DNA of 64,000 nucleotides from Trichosphaerium sp. ATCC 40318 (taxonomy: Eukaryota > Protista > Tubulinea): positions 930,001-994,000 of the forward strand of contig JALMLS010000577.1 in NCBI GenBank assembly GCA_038496445.1. The letters are read 5' to 3'. Shown in pieces: positions 3,001 through 47,117 of this stretch; within the stretch, counting starts at the first letter, position 1, and each line of letters opens with the position of its first letter. A program made the position numbers and the translations under genes. The notes beneath the pieces are model-generated. The model made no database searches. It worked only from the letters and a program-made list of their open reading frames with translations, and had not been told where the DNA came from.

Positions 3001-4761
3001 GCTTCTGCCTTCTTTTTGAACTCTTCGCGAATCTTTTGGATTTCATTATCCTTTGACTCTTGTAGCGCTTGGTTCTTCTTTTTCAAATCTTGAATTTCGG
3101 AGTCTTTCTCCTTCAAACCATCATTTTTATCGTCAATAGCTTCCTGAACTTTTGCGTCAGCTTCAGCTTTTTGATCAGCCATTTCTTTCTTGTGGTTGGC
3201 TGTTTCGGCGGCATTACTGTCACGGAAACGCTTGATCAATTCAACAACATCATCCCAAGTTTTGCAACCTTCAGAATTTGGAGTATATTCTGCTTTAATG
3301 TGCAACTCACCAACGTCTTTACCAGCTACATGATAATTATTAGCACACGAACGCACAAAGAGCCTTCAAAAAATAGCGTACCTTTTTTCTTTGGTGCTAC
3401 AATTTTCACCCATTTATCATAGCCAGCGCCTTCGCTTAGCATCTTATGTACAGATAAATTAATTTCACCCATGCTATCGTCTTTTCCAACATCATCATCA
3501 AACACACGAAGTGTAAGAGTTTCAAAGATTGATTCAAGACTAAACTCGAATTCTTCGTCCCAAACTGGATTGAGTGTATTCTCCTTGTGGTGAGTCTTAC
3601 GTTTATCCTCACCAATGTTAAGCTTGACATAAGGATCGCTCTTGCCTGTAAGGAATACCGTATAAATTAAATTGAAAAAAAACAAAAAATAGGTCTTACC
3701 GACTAACTCTACATCTAGCAAGTCTTTGCCAGCGACAACTGTAACTTTGAGTGTACCGCCAGTAGTGAACGAATCATCGACGTCAGCGAGAGTTTCCTTA
3801 AATAATTTGAGCCAAAAAGAAAGAAACACAAAATAAATTCAGCAAAACGTACTTGTACTCGAGCGATGACTGATGTTCTTTCTTGTTTGAGTCTATCTAT
3901 CTCTGCCTGTAATCTAGCAGCTTTTTTAGCTGCTTCTGGGTCAACAGCAGGAGGATTAGAGCTACGGTGTTTGTGTTTTTTCGAGGAGGACTTTTTACGC
4001 TTTGGCGGTTCTTCTTCTTCTTCGTCCATACCGTCAGCAAGGCCGTCTGAGAAGTACTAGAAAAATAAGGAAGCGAATAAGGAGAAAAAAGAGTTTTTTG
4101 ATTGCGTTATCATAATCGTTGCAACCGATTTTGCAACATGTGCGGGTAAGTTCTCTTCGCTTGTTTGCTCTACTATTCAGTTTACAAAAACTTTCTACTC
4201 ACCTTTATGCTCAAATTAATCTCTCCGCTCACTTTGTCCTTAGACTTTCTCTTTTCTAGCGTAAACCAACCGCTTACTTTGCCTAAACAACAATTTTTAG
4301 CAAAAAACGGTTTCAAACAACAGACATACCTTTATCCATAAGCTCCGGGATGCTGAATTTAACTTGGCCCTACGTTCGTTAAGATTTGAGTGAGCTATTT
4401 AAAAACTTTTTAAAGGTTCGCACCATGAAATCTTTTCCAATTGGGTCATCGTCCCATACTATAATAGAGAACTCGCCATCAGGGCTAATATCGTCCATTT
4501 CAACCCCAAAGGTGTGCTATTTTTTATTGTAAGCGCTTCGTGACGTTGTGCGCGTACGTTGAACGTAGGATCGAGCTCGTTAGGTACAACCTTGGTTTTA
4601 CCCAGTTTCTTCGAGCCGAAGAGCAAACTGACATACGGATCGCTACTGCTGCCTATGCGTGTTTAATACGTTTTTCTCGCCTTGGAAAAGCTCGTACCTT
4701 TATCCTTTGCTATCAGGTTACGGCCTTCTTTAACCTTCACTAAAAAGCCTTCCCCAGACAT
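1..4761 (-). CDS. Large multi-C2-domain protein (paralog A), 3' end runs off the window; multi-exon
   Basis: Spliced translation starts MSGEGFLVKVKEGRNLIAKDKGSSSDPYVSLLFG. At least five C2 domains are present (GKSDPYVKL..NPVWDEEF..VFDDD; MPKLDTFGKTDGFVRL; LPKTDTIGTTDAFAVI), separated by helical/coiled-coil stretches. A D/T/A-rich linker occupies 1-600. GT-AG introns restore the frame. Confidence 0.9.
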
Positions 4762-19977: not shown

Positions 19978-22900
19978 CTAATTTTTTTTAAACTCCTCGA
20001 GAAGTTCTTCCGCTTTGGCGAGCTTTTGTTTCAAATCGTTCATTTCTACTACCGATACCTTGTCGTTAGTCCCACCCGAGTTTCCAGATGAATGCTTTCG
20101 AGAATTAGAACTATACTTGGCACCTCTAAAACAAATTTTGGTTAGTCTATTGTAGTTGAATACTAATCTTATTTAACTTACTTTTCTGAGAGTTCTATAT
20201 CTGTATGTGAAAAGATCATCCATAGTTTTGGTATAAATATCACCATCAGAGTCACTAATGCGATGCACAAGTAAGTACAAGAAAATGACTTTCATGTACT
20301 GGTACAAAAAACAATTTTTTTCGAAACACCAAGGCAAGTAGCAAAGTGCTGGTGTTTTGAAATGAAACAATAAATTAAAAAAAGGTTGTCTATTATGTAC
20401 CTGTTGCACCAAACCAAATGCCAAGAGCTCCAACTATGGTCAACGTTTTATGAGAAGATCCAGTTGAGTCTATGGAGTATCCAAAAGCAAGAAGAAGAGT
20501 TGCCCATATCAGATTATTGTAAATAGCAGCTCCCATCCATCTTGATTCATTGTACAACGATGGTACTTTACGAACTGCAAATGCAAAATATGCACCAACA
20601 AGTAAAACAGCTCCCTTTGAAATAAATTAAACTTGAAACCTTTTGTAAACAGCTATTGCTTCGTACCTCGTATACAATGGTGAGGATCAAAAATACGCTT
20701 CCGTGTCTACTCTTGCATCGAGCAATCTTAAAGTCATCATTTTGAGGATCCACAATATATCCTACTCTGTTGGGAGATGTTGCAGACCATAAGATTAGTA
20801 TGGCCTCATTTAGGTTAATTCAAATAACACGTGCACAATTGTTCAAAAAAAAACCAGAAAAAAGAAGGATACAAGTTGGATTATTATCGCAACTCCAGTT
20901 AGTTGTATCAAGTCTCTTAATGAGATTGTGGTTATTACAACATTAGAAGTACTAAAGATTTGACGAATACGGTACGTCTTGGATATCATAGGCCTAGACA
21001 ACTGGTTAAATTGTTGAAAGCTGGTGTTGTTTGAACTTACGCCATAGCGAGAATAAGTCCGAGAAGTGGAAGCCAAATACGAAGTTCACATGATAGAGAA
21101 GAAAGAGGTGCGATCCTAACAATGTTGTTATTTATGATGCCACGTGCTTATTTTGGTCGTTTTTATTTCTTACCATGCCAACGCCCCACTGTATGATAGC
21201 GCTATACCAAGTAGAATCAATAGTAGGAATTCTCTTGTAGCCGCTCTAATCACTGCTGATGACCTTGAATATTTGCATTTAGCTACAAAGATAAAGGCTA
21301 ATATAGTACACACCAGTAGTATATGACGATGACTTCAATAACAAAAGTACAAACGATGCCAAGGCTAACAAGCACCAAAGTTATGATTGTTGTAATGTCT
21401 GACCAGTCACTCCATGCTCGGATATCACGTTGCTTTTCTGAAACGATGACATAAAGATGTCCATCGTTGTAGGACGGTCTTGCAAAGAAGGGAGCGTCAA
21501 TATGAGAGAATGTACCATTGGGTGTTGTGTTATTGTTCCAAGACATTAACTTGAATCTATCACCAATATTGTATCTTATACCATCAAGGGCATCAAGTTG
21601 AAGAGTACCAGCTATGTTGAATGAGTACGGACGAACACATTGATATCAGTACCAAACTCAGGGATTATTTGAGGTCCGAATGTGATGAAAGAGTCAAATG
21701 ACATTTTTACAATACTCTCATCAGTGAGTATCATGTTGGTATCAATCAATACGTCACCCTATTTTATTGTTAAAATATATTGCTTTGAAATATATTGTTA
21801 GCGTACCTCAACCACAAACGTTGCATTTTGCATTAGAATTGAGGAATTATTACCTCTCACTTTAACTTGATCTCCAACAGTAAACGTTGATCCATCACTG
21901 TTGACGATCCTTGAATTCACAGGTTGAAATTCAACCACGAAACCTCTATTTATTGATAGTTGCCCTAATAAGGTCAATATAACACTCGTAGACTCTAGTA
22001 CGCAGTACGCTTACCATAGTTTCGAATTACAAGATCAAGTACTTTCAGTTCACCAAGAACTAATGTGGCAACAGCTGAGTCTAAGATGACCAATTGAGGC
22101 GAGGAACGCAACATACTATCATTCGTCAACACACCCTAAATAAGTATAAGTCAAAATCTGAGGATATCATGTTGTCTTCGTACACTTATGACTCCTCCTG
22201 ATGAATACTTAAATGCATCTCTAACAATAACACTCCCTTCTTCCTGAATTCTTACATTTGTGTTGGATACTGTTATGTCATTAATCTCAACAATATCAGT
22301 AACATCCCAATCAGTAAATACAATGATTTTATCAAAAACGTTTCCTAAATACAATCTTAGACAAGGGTCAACAGAAATCTGAGTACCTATAGTTTCTGGC
22401 ATGAATCCATGAAGATCAGCAGGATCAGAATTAGAGAAAGTACTGTTTGTAACAATAGGTCTACCGGAATCGGCCAACACAGCTACAAGAGGTAAGTACA
22501 ATGTTTGTTGATATAAAAATCACATGATTTAAAACAGTCGTTACAGCTAATCGTTCACATACCATAATTGCTGTTAATATCGAATTTACAACTATCAAAA
22601 ACTGAATTACTTCCAGCATTAACAGCACCTCCCAATAAAGCGTGATTATTGACAAAAGAACAGTTGGTGTACGAAGTTCCAGAAGTATATGCAGCACCTC
22701 CTTTCTCGGCTGCTGTGTTTTCAAGAAACAAACAATCTTCAACAAAATATGATCCAAAAGAGTCACCAGAAATAGCACCTCCGTTACGTGTTGCTGTATT
22801 TCGAATAAATCTCGTATTCTTTACTCGATGCGTTACAGCGAACGCAAATGAAAAAAAAATAGCGCCACCAGAGTTTCTGGCTGAGTTCTCTTCAAAAAGA

Positions 22901-24500
22901 CAATCTTCTATTGTTACTATACGTGGAGGTGTTGAAAATCTTCCAATCTGAATTAGTTTACTGAGCTCAAGAGCTCCATTGCCACCAGTGTTTTTTCTAG
23001 AATATTTAGTTGACTACACGTCATGTCATATTGAACATACCTGAAAGTAGTATTCGTAATGGTGGTATTGGTTATTCCACTAATTACAACTGCTAAAACT
23101 CCGTTGTTAGCAAAAAAAAACTAATCAGGCAGAACTCACAACTTTCTGTAGCATTATTATATTCAAACAAGCAGCCTTCTATGTTCACAACTGCTCCTAT
23201 TGGTAGATCTTGAAATAATGCTAATAAAGAGTAAGCGTAGATTTGTCATGTACAGTGTACCCAAAGCAGATCCATGTTCAGCGTTCGAATATTGAAAAGT
23301 ACATCCATAAAACTGAGCTTTGATAAGATCAAAACCCCTTACAACACCTTGGGATGTCAACACGATGAACGACTTAAGAACAAAATGTACCTGTACCGCC
23401 CACTGAATTATTTCTAAATACACAGTCTATCATTGTCGACACAGATTTGTACATAGTAACAATACTGTATCCTCTTTCCTCTCCATAGAACCGATAATTA
23501 ACAAGATCAGGGAAAAAGTAAGTCATCGTGTTGCGTTCAAAAATGACCCTAAACCAACTATTCAGCACAAAAACGCGAAAATAGATCTACCTTGTAAGAA
23601 CTACACTTGAATTCCGAACATGTAAAACGCCTGTATCATTCGCATTTACTTCCTGACAACCATTTTCAATAAACTGTGTGTCTCTACAAGAAATTCCTGA
23701 GTTGAAATAGAAACACCTGCAAAATAGTTTTGTGCTTTACGTACGTTATTTCAATATGACATCCATTCGCTGCATATAAAACAGAAGCAGCTGTATTCTT
23801 TATCAAAGTTAATTAACGTTTCATGACGTTTGCTCTGGCGGAAAAAAGGCGTACATTAAAACTATCTCCCTCCTATGTGATTGATTAATACACGAATAGT
23901 GGAAAAAAACAAGCTGTGTTGAGTCACTTACGCCATTTTGAACTACTATACCACACTCTGCATGCATAAACGTGACGAAAGATATTGATAGAATCGGAAC
24001 ACGACTTTCGTTGTATTGCCTACCACACGTGGGTATCGTTAAGAATGAGTTCACCATCTCTCCATCCCATACACTGTTCCCAAGAGATGACCCTTTTAAA
24101 AATAGTTCAGTCGGAGTTTTCAATAGAGCTGCACGCTACCTTCAATCTTTATATCATTAAGCAACTCCGGCTGGGACCATATTAGATTGGAGTTATTTGT
24201 TCCTGAAAAACACGTGTAAACAAATGTAAGTACTTCATACGTTTGTACCTTTATAGACGCCACTAGCCAGTTTAATAACATCTCCAGAAGAACTCGAATT
24301 AAACAATGTATATTTTATAGAGCGGCAAGGCTCCTGTTCATTAGTACAGTCTCCAAAATCACGTCCTATGTATCCAATACAATTAGTAACTGACATAACA
24401 TTTGTAAATTTTCAATACCATTTGGGCTTATGTACCGTTTGGTACATATACACGATGCCAGTAATGATACAAATACCAGTTTAATTGGGTACCTTCGCAT
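19978..24500 (-). CDS. Receptor copy 1: signal peptide + Pmp/pectin-lyase-like beta-helix ectodomain + class C (7tm_3) GPCR domain; multi-exon
   Basis: RYISPNG..DC...PCRSI start; FxxN/GGAI repeats (FEENSARNSGGAI, FIRNTATRNGGAI, FLENTAAEKGGAA); 7tm_3 motifs VIRAA, C.LRIWLP, SKTYRIRQIF, RKVPSLYNESRWMGAAIYN, IFIPKLW. Confidence 0.85.
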
Positions 24501-26656
24501 TAGTGGCTATGGATAGAAAGCAAAACAAATAGAACTGAGTTTTCAATTCTATTTTAGGCAGCGTAGTCTTTGTGATTTTCAATATCTAGCCAACAAAACG
24601 CCCACTGAACCTAGAAAACAAGATTAAGGTCATAGTAAAAGGGGAGCTCTCCTAAGTCAAACCGGACTTATGGCAAAAATGAGTCACAAGATTCACAAAG
24701 CAGTGAGTTTGGGATTTTCGTGTTTGTAACAAAAAAAAAAGTACTTTTGATTTCCTGGCGTATCTGGAAAATGCTGGAACGAAAACGATGTATCATACGC
24801 CTATCGGTATATGAGCCTTTCAATATATACAACTTAGCGCTTGGTACCTGTTGGTGAAACTGAGATTGAAAAAAGCAAGGCCAAACTAAACAACAACACA
24901 CTCTTTTTGCAATTTGAATTACCTAACAGCTAGAGCCAGATTACGTAAGCATTCCACACACGCTCATCGGCTTTAAAAGATGCTGTTAAACAAGGTAGTG
25001 GAGTGTGAGAGCATAAAATTACGTTGTAAGCACGGAAAAAAGTACTTACTTAAAAGCAAAAACTTTTTGCCTTAAAAGGAAAGTAGCAACATAAACTCCT
25101 TGAACACGGTTTCATGATGTCTGCACATTACACAGCCTTTTAATTGTTCCAAATATGTAGGAACTGAAGTTATAAGTGTTTTACAGCGTTTAGTGGCTAA
25201 AAAGTTAATTGCTCTTTAAAATCAAAGAACAATACTTACAAGCTTTATTTGTACGTAAAATATTCGTTTCCAAGCATAAAACGCTGTTTAAAACAAAAAG
25301 GCAAGAAAAAGGTATAATGCCAGGCAATGCCATCGATATTCTCTAAACTATATAAACAGATCATATAATTCTGTTTCTACATAGTCACAGTTTGGACCGT
25401 TTTGGCCCTAGCCTTTAATATTGGTTTTACGAAAAATTCCAGCTGTAGAAAACTGGGCCATTTTTAAAAACACACAAACGTGCCAGCTAAAATACATCAC
25501 TTGCAACGCATGTAAGTATATCAGTGGCAATAACTGAGATGTAAAATTGATTGTTTGATAACTTTGGGAAAAAAAAAATGTAAGTGAGTACTTTTGGTGC
25601 AAACGCTATTGGCATGTGTATTTTTACAATTGATCATAGTGGCACCACTATGCCATATACTCATTTTCTAATGAAGAAAAGTGTAGAACATAACATATAA
25701 CATCAGTGTAAAATAGTAAACCTTTTGTTTCATCAAGTATCATTCAACAAACTCCCACATTTGACGCACTTTATTGTGCATTTACTTTTCAATAACATGC
25801 TTTGAGGCTATTAAATACGACCATTGACACCTACTCAAAGTGATGAAAACATAATTGATAATGTGTGCAATAAGTATAACTTAGCTAAACAATGCTTAAA
25901 AAGTCACAAAATTAAACTATTTTTTAGAGTCATTATAGGCTACATCACTGTTGGTGAATGTTTCATACTCTCTATATATTATTCCCAGTATGTATGGCTA
26001 CTATTTACTCAAGCGTCAATCATAAAAAACTATTTTCAACATCAAAATAATTTTGTTTTAAAAGTGGAGTGCTTACATAATCTGGCTCTAGTAATCCAAC
26101 ATTGCACGCAAGCACCAAAAGACGGAGGCACCAGGTGCTACAGGTTCGAATACAATGTGATCTTACTCAAAACATTCTTTGTTGAGGCTACAATTCTAAA
26201 GAAAGTACATTCAAAACGTCACAAGTAAGTCTGGATAATGACTTGGGCGCCTCTACAGGATAAGGGAGTTCTTGTGAAGTTGAACTAAAGCAATCCACAC
26301 TTAATGCACTCGGACACTTAATACAACAACTATCTCTTTACTACATCGCCCTCTTCCACGGTAGATTGCAACGTATTTGTTGGAGGCTAGTACAACAGAA
26401 CAGTTTTGCTACTGGTATCATAAACGCACAAGAGTGACTACTGCGTGTTGAATAAGCATCTACACTCATGCCATTTTCCAATATTTAGTACAAACGCTGC
26501 TTCAAACAACGTGTCAGCCTTTCAATTGTAATCGACTGAAATTTCTGCGAATTTTAGTCAAACGCCAATAACAAACTGATTACTGTATACATAAAATCTA
26601 GCTAGAGCAAAGCTCTTTATTCATCTAGGACTACAATATTGTTTAATTGGTACTAA

Positions 26657-29600
26657 TCAATAGTTTAAGCTAATTTTGGAGTCCTTGAGAAGCTTTTCCG
26701 CTTTGGCAAGCTTTTGTTTCAAATCGTTCATTTCCACTACTAATACCTTGCTATCATTCGTACTTGAATTTCCAGATGAATGCTTTCGAGAATTAGAATT
26801 ATACTTGGCACCTCTGAAAAGAATTTTGGTTAGTCTATTGTAGTTGAATACTAATCTTATTTAACGAGCTTGTGAAACTTACTTTTCTGAGAGTTCTATA
26901 TCTGTATGTGAAAAGATCATCCATAGTTTTGGTATAAATATCACCATCAGAGTCACTAATACGATGCACAAGTGAGTACAAGGAAATGACATGTATTGGT
27001 ACAAAAAACCAAATCAAGCCCGAAAACGTTGCTTTGTTTAGATTTGAAAAGCGATTAGAAAAAAAGTTGGCTATTGTTTATATTTGTGTACCTGTTGCAC
27101 CAAACCAAATGCCAAGAGCTCCAACAATAGTCAATGTTTTATGAGAGGATCCAGTTGAGTCTATGGAGTATCCAAAAGCAAGAAGAAGAGTTGCCCATAT
27201 CAGATTATTGTAAATAGCAGCTCCCATCCATCTTGATTCATTGTACAGCGATGGTACTTTACGAACTGCAAATGCAAAATATGCACCAACAAGTAAAACA
27301 GCTCCCTTTTGAAATAAATTAAACTTGAAACCTTTTGTAAACAGCTATTGCTTCATACCTCGTATACAATGGTGAGGATCAAAAATACGCTTCCATATCT
27401 ACTTTTGCATCGAGCAATCTTAAAGTCATCATTTTGAGGATCCACAATATATCCTACTCTGTTGGGCGATGTTGCCGACCATAAGATTAGTATGGCCTTA
27501 TTTAGGTTAATTCAAATAACACGTGCACAATTGTTCAAAAAAAAACCAGAAAAAAGAAGGATACAAGTTGGATTATTATCGCAACTCCAGTTAGTTGTAT
27601 CAAGTCTCTTAATGAGATTGCAGTTATAGAAATATTAGCAGTACTGAATATCCGACGGATGCGGTACGTCTTGGATATCATAGGCCTATAACAGTTATTT
27701 TGTACAAATGACTATTTAGGAAAGCTGATGTTGTTAAACTTACGCCATTGCAATAATAAGCCCGAGAAGTGGAAGCCAAATACGAAGTTCACATGATAAA
27801 GAAGAAAGAGGAGCGATCCTAACAATGTTGTTATTTATGATGCCACGTGCTTATTTTTTTCGTTATTATTGTTTACCATGCCAACGCCCCACTGTATGAC
27901 AGCGCTATACCAAGTAGAATCAGGATTAGAAATTCTTTTGTAGACGCTCTAATTACTGATGATGACCTTAAATATTGTTAATTCAATACAAGTAGCTAAG
28001 GCTAACGATACGCACCAGTAGTATATGACGATGACTTCAATCACCAAAGTGCAAATGATACCAAGGCTTACAAGCACCAAAGTTATGATTGTTGTAATGT
28101 CTGACCAGTCACTCCATGCTCGGATATCACGTTGCTTTTCTGAAACGATGACATAAAGATGTCCATCGTTGTAGGACGGTCTTGCAAAGAAGGGAGCGAC
28201 AATGTGAGAGAATGTACCATTGGGTGTTGTGTTATTGTTCCAAGACATTAACTTGAATCTATCACCAATATTGTATCTTATACCATCAGGAGCATCAAGT
28301 TGAAGAGTACCAGCTTTATCGAATTAGCACGGAGGATACTTTGCAACAAGGAGGTGTATGTACCAAACTCAGGGACTATTAGAGGCCCGAATGTGATGAA
28401 AGAGTCAAATGACATTTTTACAATACTCTCATCAGTGAGTATCATGTTGGTATCAATCAATACGTCACCCTATTGTATTGGTAAACTAAATTGCTTTGAA
28501 ATATATTGTGAGTGTACCTCAACCACAAACGTTGCATTTTGCATTAGAATTGAGGAATCATTACCTCTCAGTTCAACTTGATCTCCAACAGTAAACGTTG
28601 ATCCATCACTGTTGATGATCCTTGAATTCACAGGTTGAAATTCAACCACGAAACCTCTATTTATTGATAGTTGTCCTAATAAGGTCAATATAACAATCTA
28701 AGACTCTAGTATGTAGTACGCTTACCATAGTTTCGAATTACAAGATCAAGTACTTTTAATTCACCAAGAACTAATGTGGCAACAGCTGAGTCTAAGATGA
28801 CCAATTGAGGCGAGGAACGCAACATACTATCATTCGTCAACACACCCTAAATAAGTATAAATGTTAGTCAAAAGCTGAGGATATCATGTATTCTTCGTAC
28901 ACTTATGACTCCTCCTGATGAATACTTAAATGCATCTCTAACAATAACACTCCCTTCTTCCTGAATTCTTACATTTGTGTTGGATACTGTTATGTCATTA
29001 ATCTCAACAATATCAGTGACATTCCAATCAGTGAATACAATGATTTTATCAAAAACGTTTCCTAAATACAATCTTAGACAAGAGTCAATACAAAATCTGA
29101 GTACCTATAGTTTCTGGCATGAATCCATGAAGATCAGCAGGGTCAGAATTAGAGAAGGTACTGTTTGTTACAACGGGTGCACCAAAATCGGCCAACACAG
29201 CTACAAGAGGTAAGTACACCGTTTGTTGATAAAAATCACGTGATTTGACAAAATTGTTAAAGCTAATCGTTCACATACCATAATTGCTGTTAATATCGAA
29301 TTTACAACTATCAAAAACTGAATTACTTCCAGCATTAACAGCTCCTCCCAATAACCCGTGATTATTGACAAAAGAGCAATTGGTGTATGAAGTTCCGAAA
29401 GTATATGCGGCACCTCCTTTCAAGGCGGCTGTGTTTTCAAGAAACAAACAATCTTCAAAAAAGTATCCTGCTCCAAAACCATGAATAGCACCTCCGTCAC
29501 GTGTTGCTGTATTTCGAATAAATCTCGTATTTCTTATTCGATACGTTACAGCGAACGCAAATGAAAATAAAATAGCTCCACCAGTATTCCTGGCTGAGTT

Positions 29601-31234
29601 CTCTTCAAAAAGACAATCTTCTATTATTACTACACGTGGATTTGTTGACAATCTTCCAGTCCTAATTAGTTTACCGAGTTCGAGCGCTCCATTAATACCA
29701 GTGTTTTTTCTAGAATATTTAGTTGACTACACGTCATGTCACACTGGACGTACCTGAAAGTAGTATTCGTAATGGTGGTATTGGTTATTCCACTAATTAC
29801 AATCGCTAAAACTGGTGTTAGCTTACAGCTTATAGAATAGCAGAACTTACGACTTGCTGTAGCATTATTATACTCAAACAAGCATCCTGCTATATTCACA
29901 ACTGCTCCTATTGGTAGATCTTGAAATAATGCTAATAAAGAGTAAGCGTAGATTTGTCATGTACAGTGTACCCAAAGCAGATCCATGTTCAGCGTTCGAA
30001 TATTGAAAAGTACATCCATAAAACTGAGCTTTGATAAGATCAAAACCCCTTACAACACCTTGGGCTGTCAAACACGATGAACGAGTTAAGAACAAAAATG
30101 TACCTGCTCCACCAACTGAATTATTTCTAAATACACAGTCTGTCATTGTTGACACAGATTTGTATACAGTAACAATACTGTATCCTCTTTCCTCTCCATA
30201 GTATCGAAAATTGAGACCATCACGAAATACGTAAGTCATCGTGTTGCGTTCAAAAATGACCCTAAACCATCTATTCAGCACAGAAACGCGAAAATGGATC
30301 TACCTTGTAAGAACTACACTTGAATTCCGAACATGTAAAACGCCTGTATCATTCGCATTTACTTCCTGACAACCATTTTCAATAAACTGCGTGTCTCTAC
30401 AAGACCAGTTAATAGAAAATACATGCAAAATAGTTTTGTGCTTCACGTACGTTATTTCAATATGACATCCATTCGCTGCATATAAAACAGAAGCAGCTGT
30501 ATTCTTTATCAAAGTTAAATTACGTTTCGTGACGTTTGCTGTGAAAAAAAGTCGTACATTAAAACTATCTCCCTCCTATTTGATTGATTAATACCAAAAT
30601 ACCTGAAAATAGGCGAAAAAAAAATTAAAAAAAGAGCTTTGTTTGCGTCACTTACACCATTTTGAACTACTATGCCACACTCTGCGTGCGTAAACGTGAC
30701 GAAAGATATTGATAGAATCGGAATACGATTTTCGTCGTATTGTCTGCCACACGTGGGTATCGTTACGAATGAGTTCACCATCTCTCCATCCCACACACTG
30801 CCTCCAAGAGGTGACCCTATTGAAAAAAATTTAGTTCAGTTCGTTAACGGAGTTTAAATAGAGCTATGCGTTAACCTTCAATCTTTATATCATTAAGCAA
30901 CTCCGGCTGGGACCATATTAGATTGGAGTTATTTGTTCCTGAAAACACGTCAGCAGACGTGTAAGTACTTCATTACGTTTGTACCTTTATAGACGCCACT
31001 AGCCAGTTTAATAACATCTCCAGAAGAACTCGAATTAAACAATGTATATTTTATAGAGCGGCAAGGCTCCTGTTCATTAGTGCAGTCTCCAAAATCGCGT
31101 CCTAAAGCAATACAATTAGTAACTGACCAAACATTTGGATATTTTTTAATACCATTTGGGCTTATGTACCGTTTGGTACATATACACGATGCCAGTAATG
31201 ACAGAAAAACCAGTTTACTTAAATGCCTTCGCAT
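26657..31234 (-). CDS. Receptor copy 2: beta-helix ectodomain + class C GPCR 7TM; multi-exon
   Basis: Near-identical exon/intron layout to copy 1. Starts MRRHLSKLVFLSLLASCICT and carries the same FxxN/GGAI and 7tm_3 motifs. Confidence 0.85.
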
Positions 31235-31277
31235 TAGTGGTTGTGTTGATAGAAAGGCAAAACAATAATTATTAAGT

Positions 31278-31860
31278 TTTCGGGGCTTCCTAATTTAGAC
31301 GAAAGTCCTCGAGCGCAAGCAAAAAGGGAGACACGTGTTATGACAAGTAATGTCTATTCATAAATGAATGATTTTAACACTGTTAAAGCTCTCCATCTAG
31401 AAGCCTTTTATTCTCCTTTGTCTATTTAAAATAAATACAACAGTTTTCGAAGCTGATCTTTTTTTTATCACTAAATTTTTAAAAGTGCTCACTATAAAAC
31501 AAAAAACTTTCGCTATCCAAATAAGCTTTGAAATTATGTGGTTGATTTAGCGCGCCTTTTTATACTAAAAAGAGTGTTTTTAAGGGAAGGGAGCCGCAGT
31601 TTAGTTCTAAAAAAACATCCCAGTGGTAATGTTTCGACTGCCGTATATCTTACGCACGCGTGGTTACCCTGTAGCTTTGTTAGAGGACAACAGGAAGAAA
31701 GGTTTGTTATTAACGGCACGTGCAGTTTTCCGAAATTAAAGTAGTTACATAACGCTGTAAATCACCTGAGGGATGCATCTAATGGTGTTTCTCCCAATTT
31801 CTTGAGTTCCGAAAACGGAGAATAAAGACAAAAAAAATTGGCTAGTACGTTTTTTGGCCA
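31278..31860 (-). pseudogene. Degenerate partial copy of the 36797-37260 region, including the last exon of the small ankyrin gene
   Basis: 31717-31860 aligns by eye with 37111-37255 (cacgtg..ttttccgaaattaaagtagttacataacgc..gatgcatctaatggtgtttctccc) with indels. 31278-31440 aligns with 36797-36940. Confidence 0.75.
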
Positions 31861-32082
31861 AAGTGAAGAATGTTACATCTAGAAATAGTCTTTGACAGTG
31901 GTACTAAACATCCACTTACCCACGAGTGTGTTGCGTACTTTAATCTAGGAAGAACAAGCTCTTTTATTAAACCAAGGAATTCTGGGTTAGACGAACAAAG
32001 CTGTTATTTTATGATAGTTAATGTTTATGATGAAATCTAGTTACAGCAAGACCTTTACTCTAGTACTACAATATTCTTTACT

Positions 32083-35000
32083 TTACTCATCATAATTTAA
32101 ACTAATTTTGGACTCCTTAAGAAGTTTTTCTGCTTTGGCAAGCTTTTTCTTCAAATCGTTCATTTCTACTGACGATACCTTGCTATTAGTCCCACCTGAG
32201 TTTCCAGATGAATGCTTTCGAGAATTAGAACTATACTTGGCACCTCTGAAACGAATTTTGGTTAGTCTGTTGTACCAACATCAAGTTGAATAACGAGCTT
32301 GTGAAACTTACTTTTCTGAGAGTTCTAAATCTGTATGTGCAAAGATCATCCATAGTTTTGGTATAAATATCACCATCAGAGTCACTAATACGATGCACAA
32401 GTAAGTACAAGAAAATTGAAATGGCGTGCCAAACATGAGCTTAAAACAAATGAGATAAGGTTGTCTGTTTTGTACCTGTTGCACCAAACCAAATGCCAAG
32501 AGCTCCAACAATAGTCAATGTTTTATGAGAGGATCCAGTTGAGTCTATGGAGTATCCAAAAGCGAGGAGAAGAGTTGCCCATATCAGATTATTGTAAATA
32601 GCAGCTCCCATCCATCTTGATTCATTGTACAACGATGGTACTTTACGAACTGCAAATGCAAAATATGCACCAACAAGTAAAACAGCTCCCTTTGAAATAA
32701 ATTAAACTTGATACCTTTTGTCAACAGCTATTACTTCGTACCTCGTATACAATGGTGAGGATCAAAAATACGCTTCCGTATCTACTCTTGCATCGAGCAA
32801 TCTTAAAGTCATCATTTTGAGGATCCACAATATATCCTACTCTGTTGGGTGATGTTGCAGACCATAAGATTAGTATGGCCTCATTTAGGTTAATTCAAAT
32901 AACACGTGCGCAATTGTTCAAAAAAAACCCAGAAAAAAGAAGGATACAAGTTGGATTATTATCGCAACTCCAGTTAGTTGTATCAAGTCTCTTAAAGTGA
33001 TTGCGGTTATAGATATATTAGCAGTACTGAATATTCGACTTATACGATATGTCTTAGATATCATAGGCCTAGAAAATTTGTTATTTGTACAGATGACACT
33101 CGCTTGAACTTACGCCATAGCGAGAATAAGTCCGAGAAGTGGAAGCCAAATACGAAGTTCACATGATAAAGAAGAAAGAGGTGCGAGCCTAACAATGTTG
33201 TTATTTATGACGCCACTCTTCCCTTTATTTCTTACCATGCCAATGCTCCACTGTATGACAGCGCTATACCGAGTAGAATCAAGATTAGGAATTCTCTTGT
33301 AGAGGCTCTAATCACTGCTGATGACCTTAATATTGTTAATTCAATACAAGTAGCTAATCAATACGCATTTGCAAAGCTACATAGATTAAATCTAACGATA
33401 CGCACCAGTAGTATATGACAATGACTTCAATCACCAAAGTGCAAATGATACCAAGGCTTACAAGCACCAAAGTTATGATTGTTGTAATGTCTGACCAGTC
33501 ACTCCATGCTCGGATATCACGTTGCTTTTCTGAAACGATGACATAAAGATGTCCATCGTTGTAGGATGGTCTTGCAAAGAAGGGAGCGTCAATGTGAGAG
33601 AATGTACCATTGGGTGTTGTGTTATTGTTCCAAGACATTAACTTGAATCTATCACCAATATTGTATCTTATACCATCAAGAGCATCAAGTTGAAGAGTGC
33701 CAGCTATGTTAAATGAGTATGACGAACACATTGATATCAATACCAAACTCAGGGATTATTTGAGGTCCGAATGTGATGAAAGAGTTAAGTGCCATTCGTA
33801 CAATACTCTCATCAGTGAGTATCATGTTGGTATCAATCAATACGTCACCCTATTGTATTGGTAAACTAAATTGCTTTGAAATATATTGTGAGTGTACCTC
33901 AACCACAAATGTTGCATTTTTTACTAGAATTGAGGAATCATTACCCCTCAGTTCAACTTGATCTCCAACAGTAAACGTTGATCCATCACTGTTGATGATC
34001 CTTGAATTCACAGGTTGAAATTCAACCACGAAACCTCTATTTATTGATAGTTGTCCTAATTGAGATTAGTACAAATCTAAGGCTCTAGTACGCAGTACGC
34101 TTACCATAGTTTCGAATTACAAGATCAAGTACTTTCAGTTCACCAAGAACTAATGTGGCAACAGCTGAGTCTAAGATGACCAATTGAGGCGAGGAACGCA
34201 ACATACTATCATTCGTCAACACACCCTAAATAAGTATAAGTATAAGTCAAAAGCTGAGGATATCATGTTGTCTTCGTACACTTATGACTCCTCCTGATGA
34301 ATACTTAAATGCATCTCTAACAATGACACTCCCTTCTTCCTGAATTCTTACATTTGTGTTGGTTACTGTTATGTCATTAATCTCAACAACATCAGTAACA
34401 TCCCAATCAGTGAATACAATGATTTTATCAAAAACGTTTCCTAAATACAATTTTAGACAAGGGTCAACAGAAAGCTGAGTACCTATAGTTTCTGGCATGA
34501 ATCCATGAAGATCAGCAGGATCAGAATTAGAGAAAGTACTGTTGGTCACAACGGGTGTACCAAAATCGGCCACCACAGCTACAAGAGGTTCAATGTAAGT
34601 ACAATGTTTGATACAAAATGATCAAAAATGCTACGTAAAAGCGTTCACATACCATAATTGCTGTTAATATCGAATTTGCAACTCTCCAAAACAGAGTTAC
34701 TTCCAGAATTAACAGCACCTCCCGATAACGCGTGATTGTTGATAAAAGAACAGTTGGTATATGAAGTTCCAGAAGTATCTGCAGCACCTCCTTTCTCGGC
34801 TGCTGTGTTTTCAAGAAACAAACAATCTTCAAAAAAGTATCCTGATCCAAAAGCATAAATAGCACCTCCATTACGTGTTGCTGTATTTCGAATAAATCTC
34901 GTATTTCTTATTCGATACGTTACAGCAAATACAAACTCAAATAAAAGGGCGCCTCCAGAATTTCTGGCTGAGTTCTCTTCAAAAAGACAATCTTCTATTG

Positions 35001-36582
35001 TTACAAAACGTGGATTTGTTGACAATGCTCCAATCTGGATTAATTTACCAAATTCAATTCCACTGTTACCAGTGTTTTTTCTAGAATATTTAGTTGACTA
35101 CACGTCATGTCATATTGAACATACCTGAAAGTAGTATTCGTAATGGTGGTATTGGTTATTCCGCTAAATACAACTGCTAACACTCCGTTGTTAATACAGA
35201 GAAAACTAATCAAGGAGAACTTACGACTTGCTGAAGCATTATTATACTCAAACAAGCATCCTGCTATATTCACAACTGCTCCTATTGGTAGATCTTGAAA
35301 TAATGCTAATAAAGAGTAAGCGTAGATTTGTCATGTACAGTGTACCCAAGGCAGATCCATGTTCAGCGTTCGAATATTGAAAAGTACATCCATAAAACTG
35401 AGCTTTGATAAGATCAAAACCCCTTACAACACCTTGGGCTGTCAAACACGATGAACGACTTAAGAACCAAAATGTACCTGTACCGCCAACTGAATTATTT
35501 CTAAATACACAGTCTATCATTGTCGACACAGACTTGTACATAGTAACAATACTGTATCCTCTTTCCTCTCCATAGAACCGGTAATTAACAAGATCAGGGA
35601 AAAAGTAAGTCATCGTGTTGCGTTCAAAAATGACCCTAAACTATTTAGCACAGAAACGCGAAAATGGTTGCTACCTTGTAAGAACTACACTTGAATTCCG
35701 AACATGTAAAACGCCTGCATCGTTTGCACTTACTTCCTGACAACCATTTTCAATAAACTGTGTGTCTCTACAAGAAATACATCAGGTAAATAGAAATGAA
35801 ATAGTTTTGTGCTTCACGTACGTTATTTCAATATGACATCCATTTGATGCATATAAAACAGAAGCAGTATTCTTGAAACAAGTTAATTAAGTTTTGTGAC
35901 GTTCAGTTGGACAAGGCTGTGGAGAAAAAAGTCGTACATTAAAACTATCTCCCTCCTATGTGATTGATTAATACACGAAAATAGGCGAAAAAACGAGCTT
36001 TGTTTGAGTCACTTACGCCATTTTGAACTACTATGCCACACTCTGCGTGTGTAAAAGTGACGAAAGATATTGATAGAATCGGAATACGATCTTCGTCGTA
36101 TTGTCTGCCACACGTGGGTATCGTTAAGAATGAGTTCACCATCTCTCCATCCCATACACTGTTCCCAAGAGATGACCCTTTTAAAAATAGTTCAGTCGGA
36201 GTTTTCAATAGACTGCACGCTACCTTCAATCTTTATATCATTAAGCAACTCCGGCTGGGACCATATTAGATTGGAGTTATTTGTTCCTGAAAAACACGTG
36301 TTAACAAAGTAAGTACTTCATTACGTTTGTACCTTTATAGACGCCACTAGCCAGTTTAATAACATCTCCAGAAGAACTCGAATTAAACAATGTATATTTT
36401 ATAGAGCGACAAGGCTCCTGTTCATTAGTGCAGTCTCCAAAATCACGTCCTACGTAACCAATACAATTAGTAACTGACAAAACAATTGCATTTTCAATAC
36501 CATTTGGGCTTATGTACCGTTTGGTACATATGCACGACGCCAATAACGATAGAAATACTAGTTTAATTATGTGCATCCGCAT
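32083..36582 (-). CDS. Receptor copy 3: beta-helix ectodomain + class C GPCR 7TM; multi-exon
   Basis: Starts MRMHIIKLVFLSLLASCICT; same domain motifs and intron positions as copies 1 and 2. Confidence 0.85.
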
Positions 36583-37023
36583 TAGTGGTTGTGTTGATAT
36601 TATAGGTATTCAAGTTAATTGTGAATTTGGTTTGACCCATTTGTTGTAACTTGGAAAAAATAAATAGAATTCGGAGATTGAATTACACTTCTTTGTCAGG
36701 GCAAACAAAGGAAGACGTATAAGAAGTCATTTTGGACATAGACGCAAATTACACAGAATTTTCAAAAGGCACAAGAAATACACAACAATTATTTGGTTTT
36801 CGGAGTTTCCTAATTTAGAACGAAAGGCAAAGAGGGACAACGTGTTATTGACAACGCCTATTCATAAATCAACAATTAACATTGCTAACGCACGCCACCT
36901 TGCAGCGTTTATTTCTCCTTTGCCTATTTAAAACAAATACAACAAGTAGTTGTTCAGTTCGAAAAGCAGATCTTTTTTTTTTCCCATTAAATAGGCGCTT
37001 CTGATTAAATTATACACTACTTC

Positions 37024-37090
37024 TGTAACGAGAGGATTCGAGATACGTTCATAGAACACGAGATATATCAACTCGAATCCTCTCGTTACA
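37024..37090. repeat. Perfect 19-bp inverted repeat (hairpin)
   Basis: tgtaacgagaggattcgag ... ctcgaatcctctcgttaca, with a 29-nt partly paired loop. Confidence 0.9.
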
Positions 37091-37109
37091 TTTTCAGGTG
37101 ATACTAACG

Positions 37110-37611
37110 TCACGTGCTGTTTTCCGAAATTAAAGTAGTTACATAACGCCGGAAATCATCTGAGGGTGATGCATCTAATGGTGTTTCTCCCCATTTCTTG
37201 AGTTGTTCAGAAAACAGAAAGAAGACAAAAAAACTTTTGCTAGTACGTTTTTTGCTTTGACGTCCGCATCAGCTTTTATCAACAGGGCTACCATCTCCTT
37301 TAACCCACTTTCCACTGCAGCGTGTAATAGTGTTTGTTTCTTTGTTTTGAAGGGGTTAAGCACTACATTTTACAAAAAGAGTCTCTTACCGTCTAAAAGA
37401 GCGTCAGATTATTCACGGTTGTGGAATCGTACGAGCTACAATCGTTAGTATTTGTACAACGCCCTAAACTGTCCTACCACCTACTTACGCGCGTTAGACT
37501 GCATAGAGATTATTTACGTACAGTTGGTTTATTTACCACTCTAGGGTTTTTTTTAATAGCAATGCGCACTGTATCAACATCTCCAGAAGCAACTGCTTTA
37601 AACAGTGACAT
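37110..37611 (-). CDS. Small ankyrin-repeat protein; multi-exon
   Basis: MSLFKAVASGDVDTVRIAI..., QTLLHAAVESGLKEMVALLIKADADVKAKN, WGETPLDA. The middle exon structure is uncertain. Confidence 0.7.
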
Positions 37612-44735: not shown

Positions 44736-45434
44736 ATGGAGGAAGAATGTCATGTTACGTCCTTTCGTTAGCTAGGCAACACGTGGCTTTTTGTTGACAA
44801 CATACAATAGGTCATTGAGAAAAATGAGCGTTTTCAGCTCATTCTCCTTCCGCCAGAGCTTCAACTCGATATTACAGAGTTAGATCGTGAAGTATATTTA
44901 AAATGGCCATTGTTATCCAAACAAATGGCAACAGCCACGAGGTTTGATAATGCTTTGAAAAAAAATGGTAAATGGTTACAGATACGATGCAAAAAAACGA
45001 GGTGTATATTGTTTGAAAGCCATAGGTATTGGAGAAATGGTGCACTTGAGAGAGAATCAAAGATTGAATGGTTCAGAAAAAGAGGTGCAACACAGGGAAA
45101 GAGGATCCAAAAGCATTTGAGGTTTGGTAACCTTCATGGAGAATACAAAGAGTGGTACAGAAATGGGACATTACGAACTCAAAAGTATTATTACAATGGG
45201 AAGCTTGAAGGTGAGCATAAGGGTTGGCATAAAGATGGAAGTTTAGAACACTGTCATCATTATGTCAGTGATAAACTAGAAGGAGAGAGTAAGGTTTGGT
45301 ATGAGAATGGTCAATTATTTCGACATAGCATCTATGTCAATGATAAACTAGAAGGACTGTATACAGAATGGAAATACAACGGTCAATTAAAACTACAAAT
45401 AAAGTACGCCAACAATATACAAGTAAGAGAGTAA
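44736..45434 (+). CDS. F-box-like + MORN-variant (MORN_2) repeat protein, copy 1
   Basis: The frame upstream of the listed ORF reads FQLILLPPELQLDITELDREVYLKWPLLSK (F-box-like), followed by HGEYKEWYRNG..YYNGKLEGEHKGWHKDG repeats. A short first exon (MEEECH) is inferred. Confidence 0.75.
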
Positions 45435-46251: not shown

Positions 46252-47117
46252 ATGGAAAAAAAGAAGGGAGGTCGATTTAGTGTGCGTTCCTTTGTTCAAC
46301 ACAAAAAAAAAACACGTGAGAAATTGAAAACAAACACGTTTTGTTCGTTGTGTTTGATATTTTTATTTATCTTCAAGACGTTTTTGGTTTTAGTTCGTCT
46401 TGTACATTACTCTGGAATCGCTCTGTTCTCACGTGTTTGTTTCTGACAAAATATTAGCGAGATGAAAAAAATGAATCTGATAATAAGGTCATTGAGAAGA
46501 ATGAGCGCTTTCAGCTTATTCACCTTCCGCCAGAGCTTCAACTCGATATTACAGAGTTAGATCGTGAAGTGTATTTAAAATGGCCATTGTTATCCAAGCA
46601 GATGGCAACAGCCACGAGGTTTGATAGTGCTTTGAGAAACCACGGTAAATGGTTACAGAAAAGACGCAAAGAAGAGAGGCGAATCATTTTAAAAGAAGGT
46701 CAAAGGTATTGGAGAAATGGTGTACTCGAGAGAGAATCAAAGATTAAATGGGTCATAAACAACCAAGGAGAAGAAGTAAAAGTAAGGCAACAATACTGGA
46801 GGTTTGGTAACCCCCATGGAGAATACAAAGAGTGGTACAGAAATGGTACATTACAAACTCAAAAGTATTATGACAATGGCAAGCTTGAAGGTGAGCATAA
46901 GGGTTGGTATGACGATGGAAACAAAGAATACTGTTTTACACATGTCAATGGTAAACAAGAAGGAGTGTGTAAGGTGTGGCATACAAACGGACAATTGGAA
47001 GTACTATGTAACTATGTTAATGGTAAACTTGAAGGAGTTTACAAGAGGTGGTACAAAGATGGTAGGGTTATTGACCAACATATTTACGTCGATGGTATAG
47101 AACAAGAGGTGGAATAA
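46252..47117 (+). CDS. F-box-like + MORN-variant repeat protein, copy 2
   Basis: Paralog of the 44736 gene (FQLIHLPPELQLDI; G.L.G....W..NG repeats). A short first exon MEKKKGGRFS followed by a GTGCGT intron is inferred. Confidence 0.75.

Follow-up and report, generated by a model that had tools for sequence, protein, structure and literature searches.

Does a single amoebal gene join beta-helical repeats of the chlamydial polymorphic membrane protein (Pmp) type to the membrane domain of a class C G protein-coupled receptor (GPCR), and, if so, is such a receptor new? The question is raised by a stretch of 64,000 nucleotides (nt) of Trichosphaerium sp. ATCC 40318 (contig JALMLS010000577.1, positions 930,001 to 994,000), hereafter the window, to which all coordinates refer. 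A preliminary description, made from the sequence, had noted there three complete paralogs of a chimeric receptor, of an architecture that it did not recognise as characterised. The analysis reported here was based on exon-level Pfam searches, sequence searches of the PDB, collinearity with transcript-derived relatives and structure models. It revealed that the fusion is real: one gene encodes a beta-helix of Pmp type, preceded by a signal peptide and followed by a beta-rich stalk and a class C seven-transmembrane (7TM) domain.

Gene copies and gene models

The window is eukaryotic, with a G+C content of ~37% and genes broken by many short introns. Three direct repeats of ~4.6 kb each, designated copies A, B and C, are located between 19978 and 36600, with a spacing of 6.7 and 5.4 kb, and are all coding on the minus strand. 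Nucleotide identity among the three ranges between 80 and 98%, introns included. By tblastn with the final protein model exactly three copies were detected in the window, and no further gene fragments. We are highly confident that an amoebozoan GPCR gene of class C (glutamate/GABA-B type) is present here in tandem triplicate.

Introns were placed by hand on the three-copy alignment, at positions where indels cluster and where GT...AG is kept in all copies, and the reading frames were then checked. A dynamic-programming gene finder was dropped, since it ran through stop-free introns and produced wrong frames for transmembrane helices (TM) 2 and 7. In the resulting models each copy is made up of 23 exons and 22 GT-AG introns, in a pattern conserved in all three. 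Intron lengths range between 39 and 146 nt across the models, and between 39 and 91 nt in copy C. GTA is the usual donor; at the acceptor TAG or CAG predominates, and AAG is found at several sites.

In copies B and C the frame is fully open for 3.3 kb, and 44 out of 44 splice dinucleotides are intact. Every splice site is kept in copy A as well, where three frame-breaking indels are found: 2 additional nt relative to C in exon 1, at ~24408, which lead to a stop at codon 45, and single-base deletions in exon 7, at ~23382 and ~23361. Because the three lesions are all located at short homopolymers, and because copy A, when read in the C-anchored frame, has no internal stop and a ratio of nonsynonymous to synonymous substitution rates (dN/dS) of ~0.3, like the other copies, it is probably either a recent pseudogene or affected by homopolymer assembly errors. 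Of the three paralogs initially taken as complete, all are therefore present, but only B and C are complete open reading frames (ORFs), copy A being frame-broken as assembled. The positions of the copies and of their main parts are collected in Table 1.

The models also include a predicted micro-exon of 18 nt (EGDSFN), 100% identical in the three copies (35938-35955 in C, 30558-30575 in B, 23855-23872 in A). It sits in a part of the ectodomain which aligns poorly with relatives, and the introns flanking it vary by indels between copies.

Table 1. Features of the receptor array, with their positions in the window and the basis on which each was defined
Feature	Position	Strand	Basis
Copy A; same exon-intron structure, three frame-breaking indels as assembled	19978-24500	-	
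Copy B; intact, 1099 amino acids (aa), same 23-exon structure	26657-31234	-	91.6% amino-acid identity to C
Copy C; intact, 1099 aa	32083-36582	-	three-copy alignment and open-frame check
Exon 1 of C; predicted signal peptide (residues 1-20) and Cys-bearing beta-helix cap	36333-36582	-	direct reading
Exon 10 of C; Pmp-type rungs, GGA[IL]/FxxN	34653-35080	-	Pfam
Exons 11-15 of C; Cys-free beta-rich stalk, residues ~497-710	33744-34578	-	aligns to P0005, P0003, P0006
Exon 16 of C; juxtamembrane ectodomain (VSEKQRDIR.WS.W.D, conserved) and TM1	33406-33703	-	continuous ORF
Exons 16-22 of C; class C 7TM, TM1-TM7	32312-33476	-	PDB phmmer, blastp, family profile, hydropathy
Exon 23 of C; cytoplasmic tail with charged heptad-like helix (..DLKKKLAKAEKLLKESK..)	32083-32245	-	direct reading
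Upstream region of copy C	36782-37254	.	blastn within the window, 72-87% identity to 31262-31856 upstream of copy B

Fusion of the ectodomain to the membrane domain

The last segment of the ectodomain and TM1 are both held by exon 16 alone, and the ectodomain is therefore physically tied to the membrane domain. Comparison of this exon with a library of 1.84 billion representative proteins revealed matches to P0002 and P0005 (expectation value, E, 1e-12) and to P0003 (E 5e-7), proteins of 1091, 1275 and 1238 aa respectively, in which the matching sequence occupies the same position. A match to P0004, a bacterial fn3 protein (E 7e-5), was dropped as a chance low-complexity match, and a search of the ESM Atlas gave no usable match.

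P0002 is encoded by a single intron-free ORF on a 3348-nt JGI contig, and P0003 is derived from transcriptome MMETSP0405, that of the amoebozoan Trichosphaerium sp. ATCC 40318. Pfam searches identified 7tm_3 (E 7.7e-46, over the full model) and Beta_helix (E 3e-39) in P0003, where Chlam_PMP is weak (E 0.0012, below the Pfam cut-off), and 7tm_3 (E 9e-44), Beta_helix (E 1e-26) and Chlam_PMP (E 8e-8) in P0005. From these data it follows that, in relatives, both parts of the fusion are carried by a single transcript.

Spliced copy C is collinear with the transcript-derived P0005 over residues 45-1069 (35.7% identity, 638 bits), and local blastp comparison of the spliced model with P0003 and P0005 gave E values of 1e-129 or better. 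The alignment to the relatives crosses the exon junctions cleanly, supporting introns 1, 2 and 11 and those within the 7TM region; intron 11, which is hidden, is backed by the correspondence of ..ETI/G/NVFDK.. with ..GTYGNVFEN.. in a relative. The nearest relatives, found in the Trichosphaerium transcriptome, are 34-36% identical and hence are paralogs or belong to another strain. The chimeric nature first proposed for these receptors is thus established, both by an exon which spans the junction and by collinearity with a transcript-derived protein that passes Beta_helix, Chlam_PMP and 7tm_3.

The ectodomain

All the sequence motifs listed in the preliminary description, namely the signal peptide, the YISPNG..C..PC cap, the GGA[IL]/FxxN rungs, KTYRI..IF, KVPSLYNESRWMGAAIYN and IFIPK, were found by direct reading. 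The predicted signal peptide, which contains the motif MR..KLVFLSLLASCIC, is a hydrophobic leader at about residues 1-20, as defined by inspection and hydropathy only. The cap conforms to the pattern YISPNG...C...PC...DVI..A.G.Y, which is conserved in P0005 in a MAFFT alignment, and gave no Pfam match when exon 1 was searched.

Identification of the rungs as Pmp-type beta-helix, also suggested initially, was supported by Pfam: exon 10, taken alone, matches Chlam_PMP in 4 stretches (E 2.5e-15) and Beta_helix (E 2.9e-6). Its AlphaFold2 model is an all-beta solenoid, with a predicted local distance difference test score (pLDDT) of 85.9 and a predicted template modelling score of 0.85; Foldseek searches with this single-exon model returned beta-solenoid matches only, none of them significant. 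Between the Pmp rungs and the membrane, the beta-rich stalk spans residues ~497-785 and matches no Pfam family. No cysteine is found between residues 488 and 796, which excludes a NCD3G-like linker, and neither ANF nor Peripla_BP nor NCD3G has a Pfam match on any exon or on the relatives. The ectodomain holds 13-15 NxS/T sites.

A complete relative of 903 aa, P0006, was modelled by AlphaFold2 on a shallow alignment. In the model, residues 1-510 form a beta-solenoid, mostly at pLDDT 85-95, which takes in the rungs as well as the beta-rich region beyond them, the part matching the stalk being at ~88-90; seven helices, modelled with low confidence, follow. When compared with the PDB by Foldseek, the rod matched pertactin (8e-5), Ag43, the Hap adhesin and PL6 alginate lyases, and the helices matched mGlu7, GABA-B2 and GPR156. 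These matches are weak, yet each is of a kind that would be expected.

The membrane domain and the cytoplasmic tail

Assignment of the membrane domain to class C is supported by three comparisons. When exon 21 (71 aa, covering TM5, intracellular loop 3 and TM6) was searched against the PDB by phmmer, class C GPCRs were found in 41 out of 41 chains (GPR158, mGlu1/2/3/5/7, GPR179 and GABA-B), the best being GPR158 (E 1e-4); the 40-aa exon 19 gave no match in the same search. The spliced model matches P0007, a protein containing ANF_receptor and 7tm_3, in local blastp (29% identity over residues 742-1090, E 8e-42). When a profile was made from the three closest relatives, using their 7TM sequences, it matched mGlu2 (3e-29), GABA-B2 (5e-27) and GPR158 (3e-16) over all seven helices. 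Neither GPS nor GAIN has a Pfam match on the exons or on the relatives, and the 7TM matches class C only.

TM1-5 and TM7 are above the hydropathy threshold; TM6 is more polar and weaker, and was aligned with TM6 of the relatives and of mGlu2. The motifs detected are a TM3 Cys, a Cys in extracellular loop 2 (EL2), KTYRI in TM3/intracellular loop 2, YNESRW before TM6 and IPKLW in TM7. The class C signature residues are present in both B and C, are invariant in the family alignment and are co-aligned with mGlu2; their functional meaning is taken from published mGlu structures. To judge from the alignment, the ionic-lock residues (TM3 Lys and TM6 Glu), the TM3-EL2 cysteine pair and the PKxW motif are all retained.

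A charged heptad-like tail follows the 7TM also in P0003, P0005 and P0006, and forms the long helix in which the P0006 model terminates. This coiled-coil-like tail of the family recalls the coiled coil of GABA-B, which mediates subunit pairing.

Comparison with described receptors

The N-termini of Dictyostelium GrlP, GrlQ and GrlR, family 3 GPCRs of 1407, 1095 and 1604 aa, are homologous to Chlamydia polymorphic membrane protein (Prabhu et al. 2007, PMC1885808). As in the proteins described here, a class C 7TM is combined with a long Pmp-homologous N-terminus, a BMP/flytrap domain is missing and the function is uncharacterised; GrlQ is nearly as long as the 1099-aa proteins of the window. The features which define the GrlP/Q/R type (PMC1885808) are all found at the locus, where Chlam_PMP is matched by exon 10, the 7TM is of class C and no BMP domain is present. 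In contrast to GrlP/Q/R, the genes described here form a tandem triplet and belong to a different amoebozoan lineage; the likeness is one of published description. Word-indexed protein searches with the relatives returned no Dictyostelium GrlP/Q/R and no fungal receptors; the matches consisted for the most part of bacterial Pmp/beta-helix proteins, or of a few 7tm_3 proteins.

Class C GPCRs having an ectodomain of pectin-lyase fold/parallel beta-helix are described in anaerobic gut fungi (Seppälä et al. 2016, PMC5168858). These also carry a large beta-helix ectodomain in place of ANF/flytrap on a class C 7TM, lack the nine-cysteine domain and form an expanded family, for which a carbohydrate-sensing role was proposed (PMC5168858). 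They differ in belonging to another kingdom, in their annotation, which gives a pectin lyase fold and not Pmp repeats, and in the presence of EGF domains in some of them. More generally, non-metazoan glutamate-family receptors bear diverse ectodomains absent from metazoans (2025 preprint, 10.1101/2025.04.15.649019). A 2023 survey of amoebozoan GPCRs shows a parallel beta-helix repeat in its figures as one of the domains; of the species that it sampled, only Dictyostelia and Physarum were reported to have family 3 receptors (PMC10445921).

The beta-helix class C receptor architecture, at first not recognised as characterised, is therefore already described, by both Prabhu et al. 2007 and Seppälä et al. 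2016, and functionally uncharacterised. There is no novelty in kind. What the locus adds is a set of intact examples, with a full exon map, of a receptor type that has been listed for almost twenty years and never studied, and which is shown to occur outside Dictyostelia and to be expanded there, in a discosean-type amoeba.

The 7TM is homologous over its full length to that of metazoan class C receptors (mGluR, GABA-B, GPR158/179, GPR156), with which it has in common the TM3 Cys, K-T-x-R-I, N-E before TM6 and P-K in TM7, along with the resemblance of the tail to that of GABA-B. Unlike in metazoan class C, no ANF/flytrap, NCD3G or Cache domain is present, and the ectodomain is a rigid rod, to which clam-shell closure cannot apply. 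GPR158/179 and GPR156 show that a flytrap is not indispensable to a working class C receptor. The rod thus makes these receptors naturally suited to testing how class C 7TM dimers are switched in the absence of a clam-shell domain.

With chlamydial Pmp and with autotransporter adhesins (pertactin, Ag43 and Hap, the best structural matches of the P0006 ectodomain model) the ectodomain shares GGA[ILV]/FxxN rungs and the form of a right-handed beta-helix rod. In contrast to these proteins, no C-terminal beta-barrel is present, and the genes, with a eukaryotic 7TM and 22 spliceosomal introns, are not chlamydial or bacterial; since the C-terminus is a helical 7TM, the proteins are neither Pmp nor autotransporters, and only the repeat type is common. 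Acquisition from chlamydial endosymbionts was considered and found unsupported, the bacterial matches being 22-30% identical and the named ones not chlamydial. Adhesion GPCRs (class B2) differ in having GAIN/GPS and 7tm_2, all of them missing here.

Selection and putative gene conversion

Comparison of B with C gave a synonymous substitution rate (dS) of ~0.15 and a dN/dS of 0.25 overall, 0.33 in the ectodomain and 0.08 in the 7TM. These values indicate that both copies have been kept by selection since the duplication. Over residues 351-500 both the nonsynonymous rate (dN, 0.097) and dS (0.31) are higher, while their ratio is unchanged at ~0.3. Positive selection on the rungs is therefore unsupported at this coarse scale, dN and dS being raised together, a pattern better explained by patchy gene conversion in other parts of the gene.

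When pairwise identity was evaluated in 100-nt windows over 19978-36600, it was found to switch in blocks, the copy nearest to A being C in some and B in others. At 36152-36238, for example, identity is 0.99 for C-A versus 0.67 for C-B, and at 33135-33223 it is 0.96 for B-A versus 0.81 for C-B. The identity mosaic is read as putative patchy gene conversion between the tandem copies, not as diversifying selection.

Proposed mechanism and alternative explanations

In these receptors, a long right-handed beta-helix rod of Pmp-type rungs replaces the Venus-flytrap, as in Dictyostelium GrlP/Q/R, which are of the same kind. The rod would be displayed outside the cell, as suggested by the signal peptide and the NxS/T sites, and a ligand that is polymeric or fixed to a surface, for instance a glycan or the surface of a cell or prey, may bind along its face; bacterial autotransporter adhesins and polysaccharide lyases do bind along the beta-helix face. 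Pairing of the receptors might be mediated by the 7TM together with the coiled-coil-like tail, in the manner of GABA-B. Engagement of the ligand, or clustering, would then be transmitted by the rigid stalk, which enters TM1, and would shift the two 7TM bundles relative to each other; this shift would in turn activate a heterotrimeric G protein. Adhesion or pattern sensing coupled to G proteins may reasonably be proposed, and such receptors could reveal how amoebae sense surfaces, prey or kin. Taken as a whole, identity and mechanism together, this explanation is likely to be correct and is favoured over its rivals.

Several points weigh against it. Ligand, dimerisation and G-protein coupling are purely inferred; for dimerisation and coupling the indications are indirect, namely conserved motifs in the intracellular loops and the coiled-coil-like tail. 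No protein in the library of 1.84 billion representatives is at least 50% identical to exon 16, the best match being at 44%, and hence no public transcript of these copies was found; in addition no RNA runs are listed for the locus, so that splicing and expression of the copies are sequence-predicted. Pfam, PDB and structure queries were single exons or relatives, and the joined 1099-aa models were used only in local comparisons (blastp against seven proteins, MAFFT with three relatives, dN/dS and hydropathy). On the single exons of the window, 7tm_3 reaches E 0.021 at best, because the exons are short. The seven helices of the P0006 model have a pLDDT of 45-65, and one copy out of three is broken as assembled.

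The rod could also be a contact sensor rather than a small-ligand receptor, with ectodomains binding each other or a particulate surface, such as a prey wall or a kin cell; we regard this as rather unlikely. Beta-helices of Ag43 zip together between cells, and in a contact sensor pulling or clustering would be transmitted through the rigid stalk to the class C dimer. If so, a glutamate-family receptor would act like an adhesion GPCR, the tandem copies giving different surface specificities.

It is unlikely that the proteins are membrane-anchored adhesins, which hold the cell to substrate, prey or kin and in which the 7TM is only an anchor or signals independently of G proteins. Such a role would agree with the resemblance of the P0006 ectodomain model to pertactin, Ag43 and Hap, and with the lack of both a flytrap and a Cys-rich transmission domain. 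The 7TM, however, is the most constrained part of the protein, as indicated by its dN/dS of 0.08, and the class C residues linked to activation and to G proteins are kept (the Lys of KTYRI, the Glu of NE before TM6 and PK in TM7); since an anchor would not need them, their retention disfavours a mere anchor.

Even less probable is a silent or decaying cluster, in which recent duplicates are becoming pseudogenes and are not used by the cell. The three frame breaks of copy A, which also is without the upstream region common to B and C, would fit this explanation, as would the lack of a listed RNA run and of any near-identical protein in public collections. Against it, B and C are open over their 3.3 kb with all 44 splice dinucleotides intact, and the substitution rates reported above (dS ~0.15, dN/dS 0.25 overall and 0.08 in the 7TM) indicate long-term purifying selection after duplication.

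We consider it very improbable that the beta-helix has catalytic activity, as a polysaccharide lyase or hydrolase on a receptor tether, whether the product of the reaction is then sensed or the protein is an enzyme and nothing more. An enzyme would be in line with weak Foldseek matches to PL6 alginate lyases, polygalacturonase and pectate lyase, and with annotation of the similar gut-fungal domain as pectin lyase fold (PMC5168858); the sequence signature, on the other hand, is that of the non-enzymatic Pmp repeat (Chlam_PMP, E 2.5e-15), no lyase or hydrolase Pfam family is found on any exon or homolog, and the best structural matches are adhesins.

Finally, a gene-model artefact, by which a secreted beta-helix gene and a separate 7TM gene, placed head to tail, were joined by splicing, is hardly credible, in spite of hand-curated introns and of the lack of transcript evidence for the locus, given that ectodomain sequence and TM1 lie together within the single exon 16, that no intervening stop or start occurs in either intact copy, and that transcript-derived relatives with the same fusion are collinear over more than 1000 residues.

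Upstream regions and neighboring sequences

About 0.5 kb upstream of the start is common to copies B and C (Table 1) and is probably a duplicated promoter region. By blastn within the window, it has no match in the 2.1-kb spacer located upstream of copy A (24520-26650). The latter spacer holds an unassigned ORF of 134 aa on the plus strand, at 25824-26228. An imperfect palindrome of ~70 nt, 75% self-complementary, is found in the region upstream of copy C, at 37024-37090.

Elsewhere in the window, MORN_2 repeats were detected in two ORF pieces on the plus strand, at 44910-45434 (E 4e-12) and 46569-47117 (E 8e-14). Downstream of the array as they are, these pieces are probably exons belonging either to a single MORN-repeat gene or to two such genes. 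An ORF piece on the minus strand, at 3329-3829, contains a C2 domain (E 2.4e-23).

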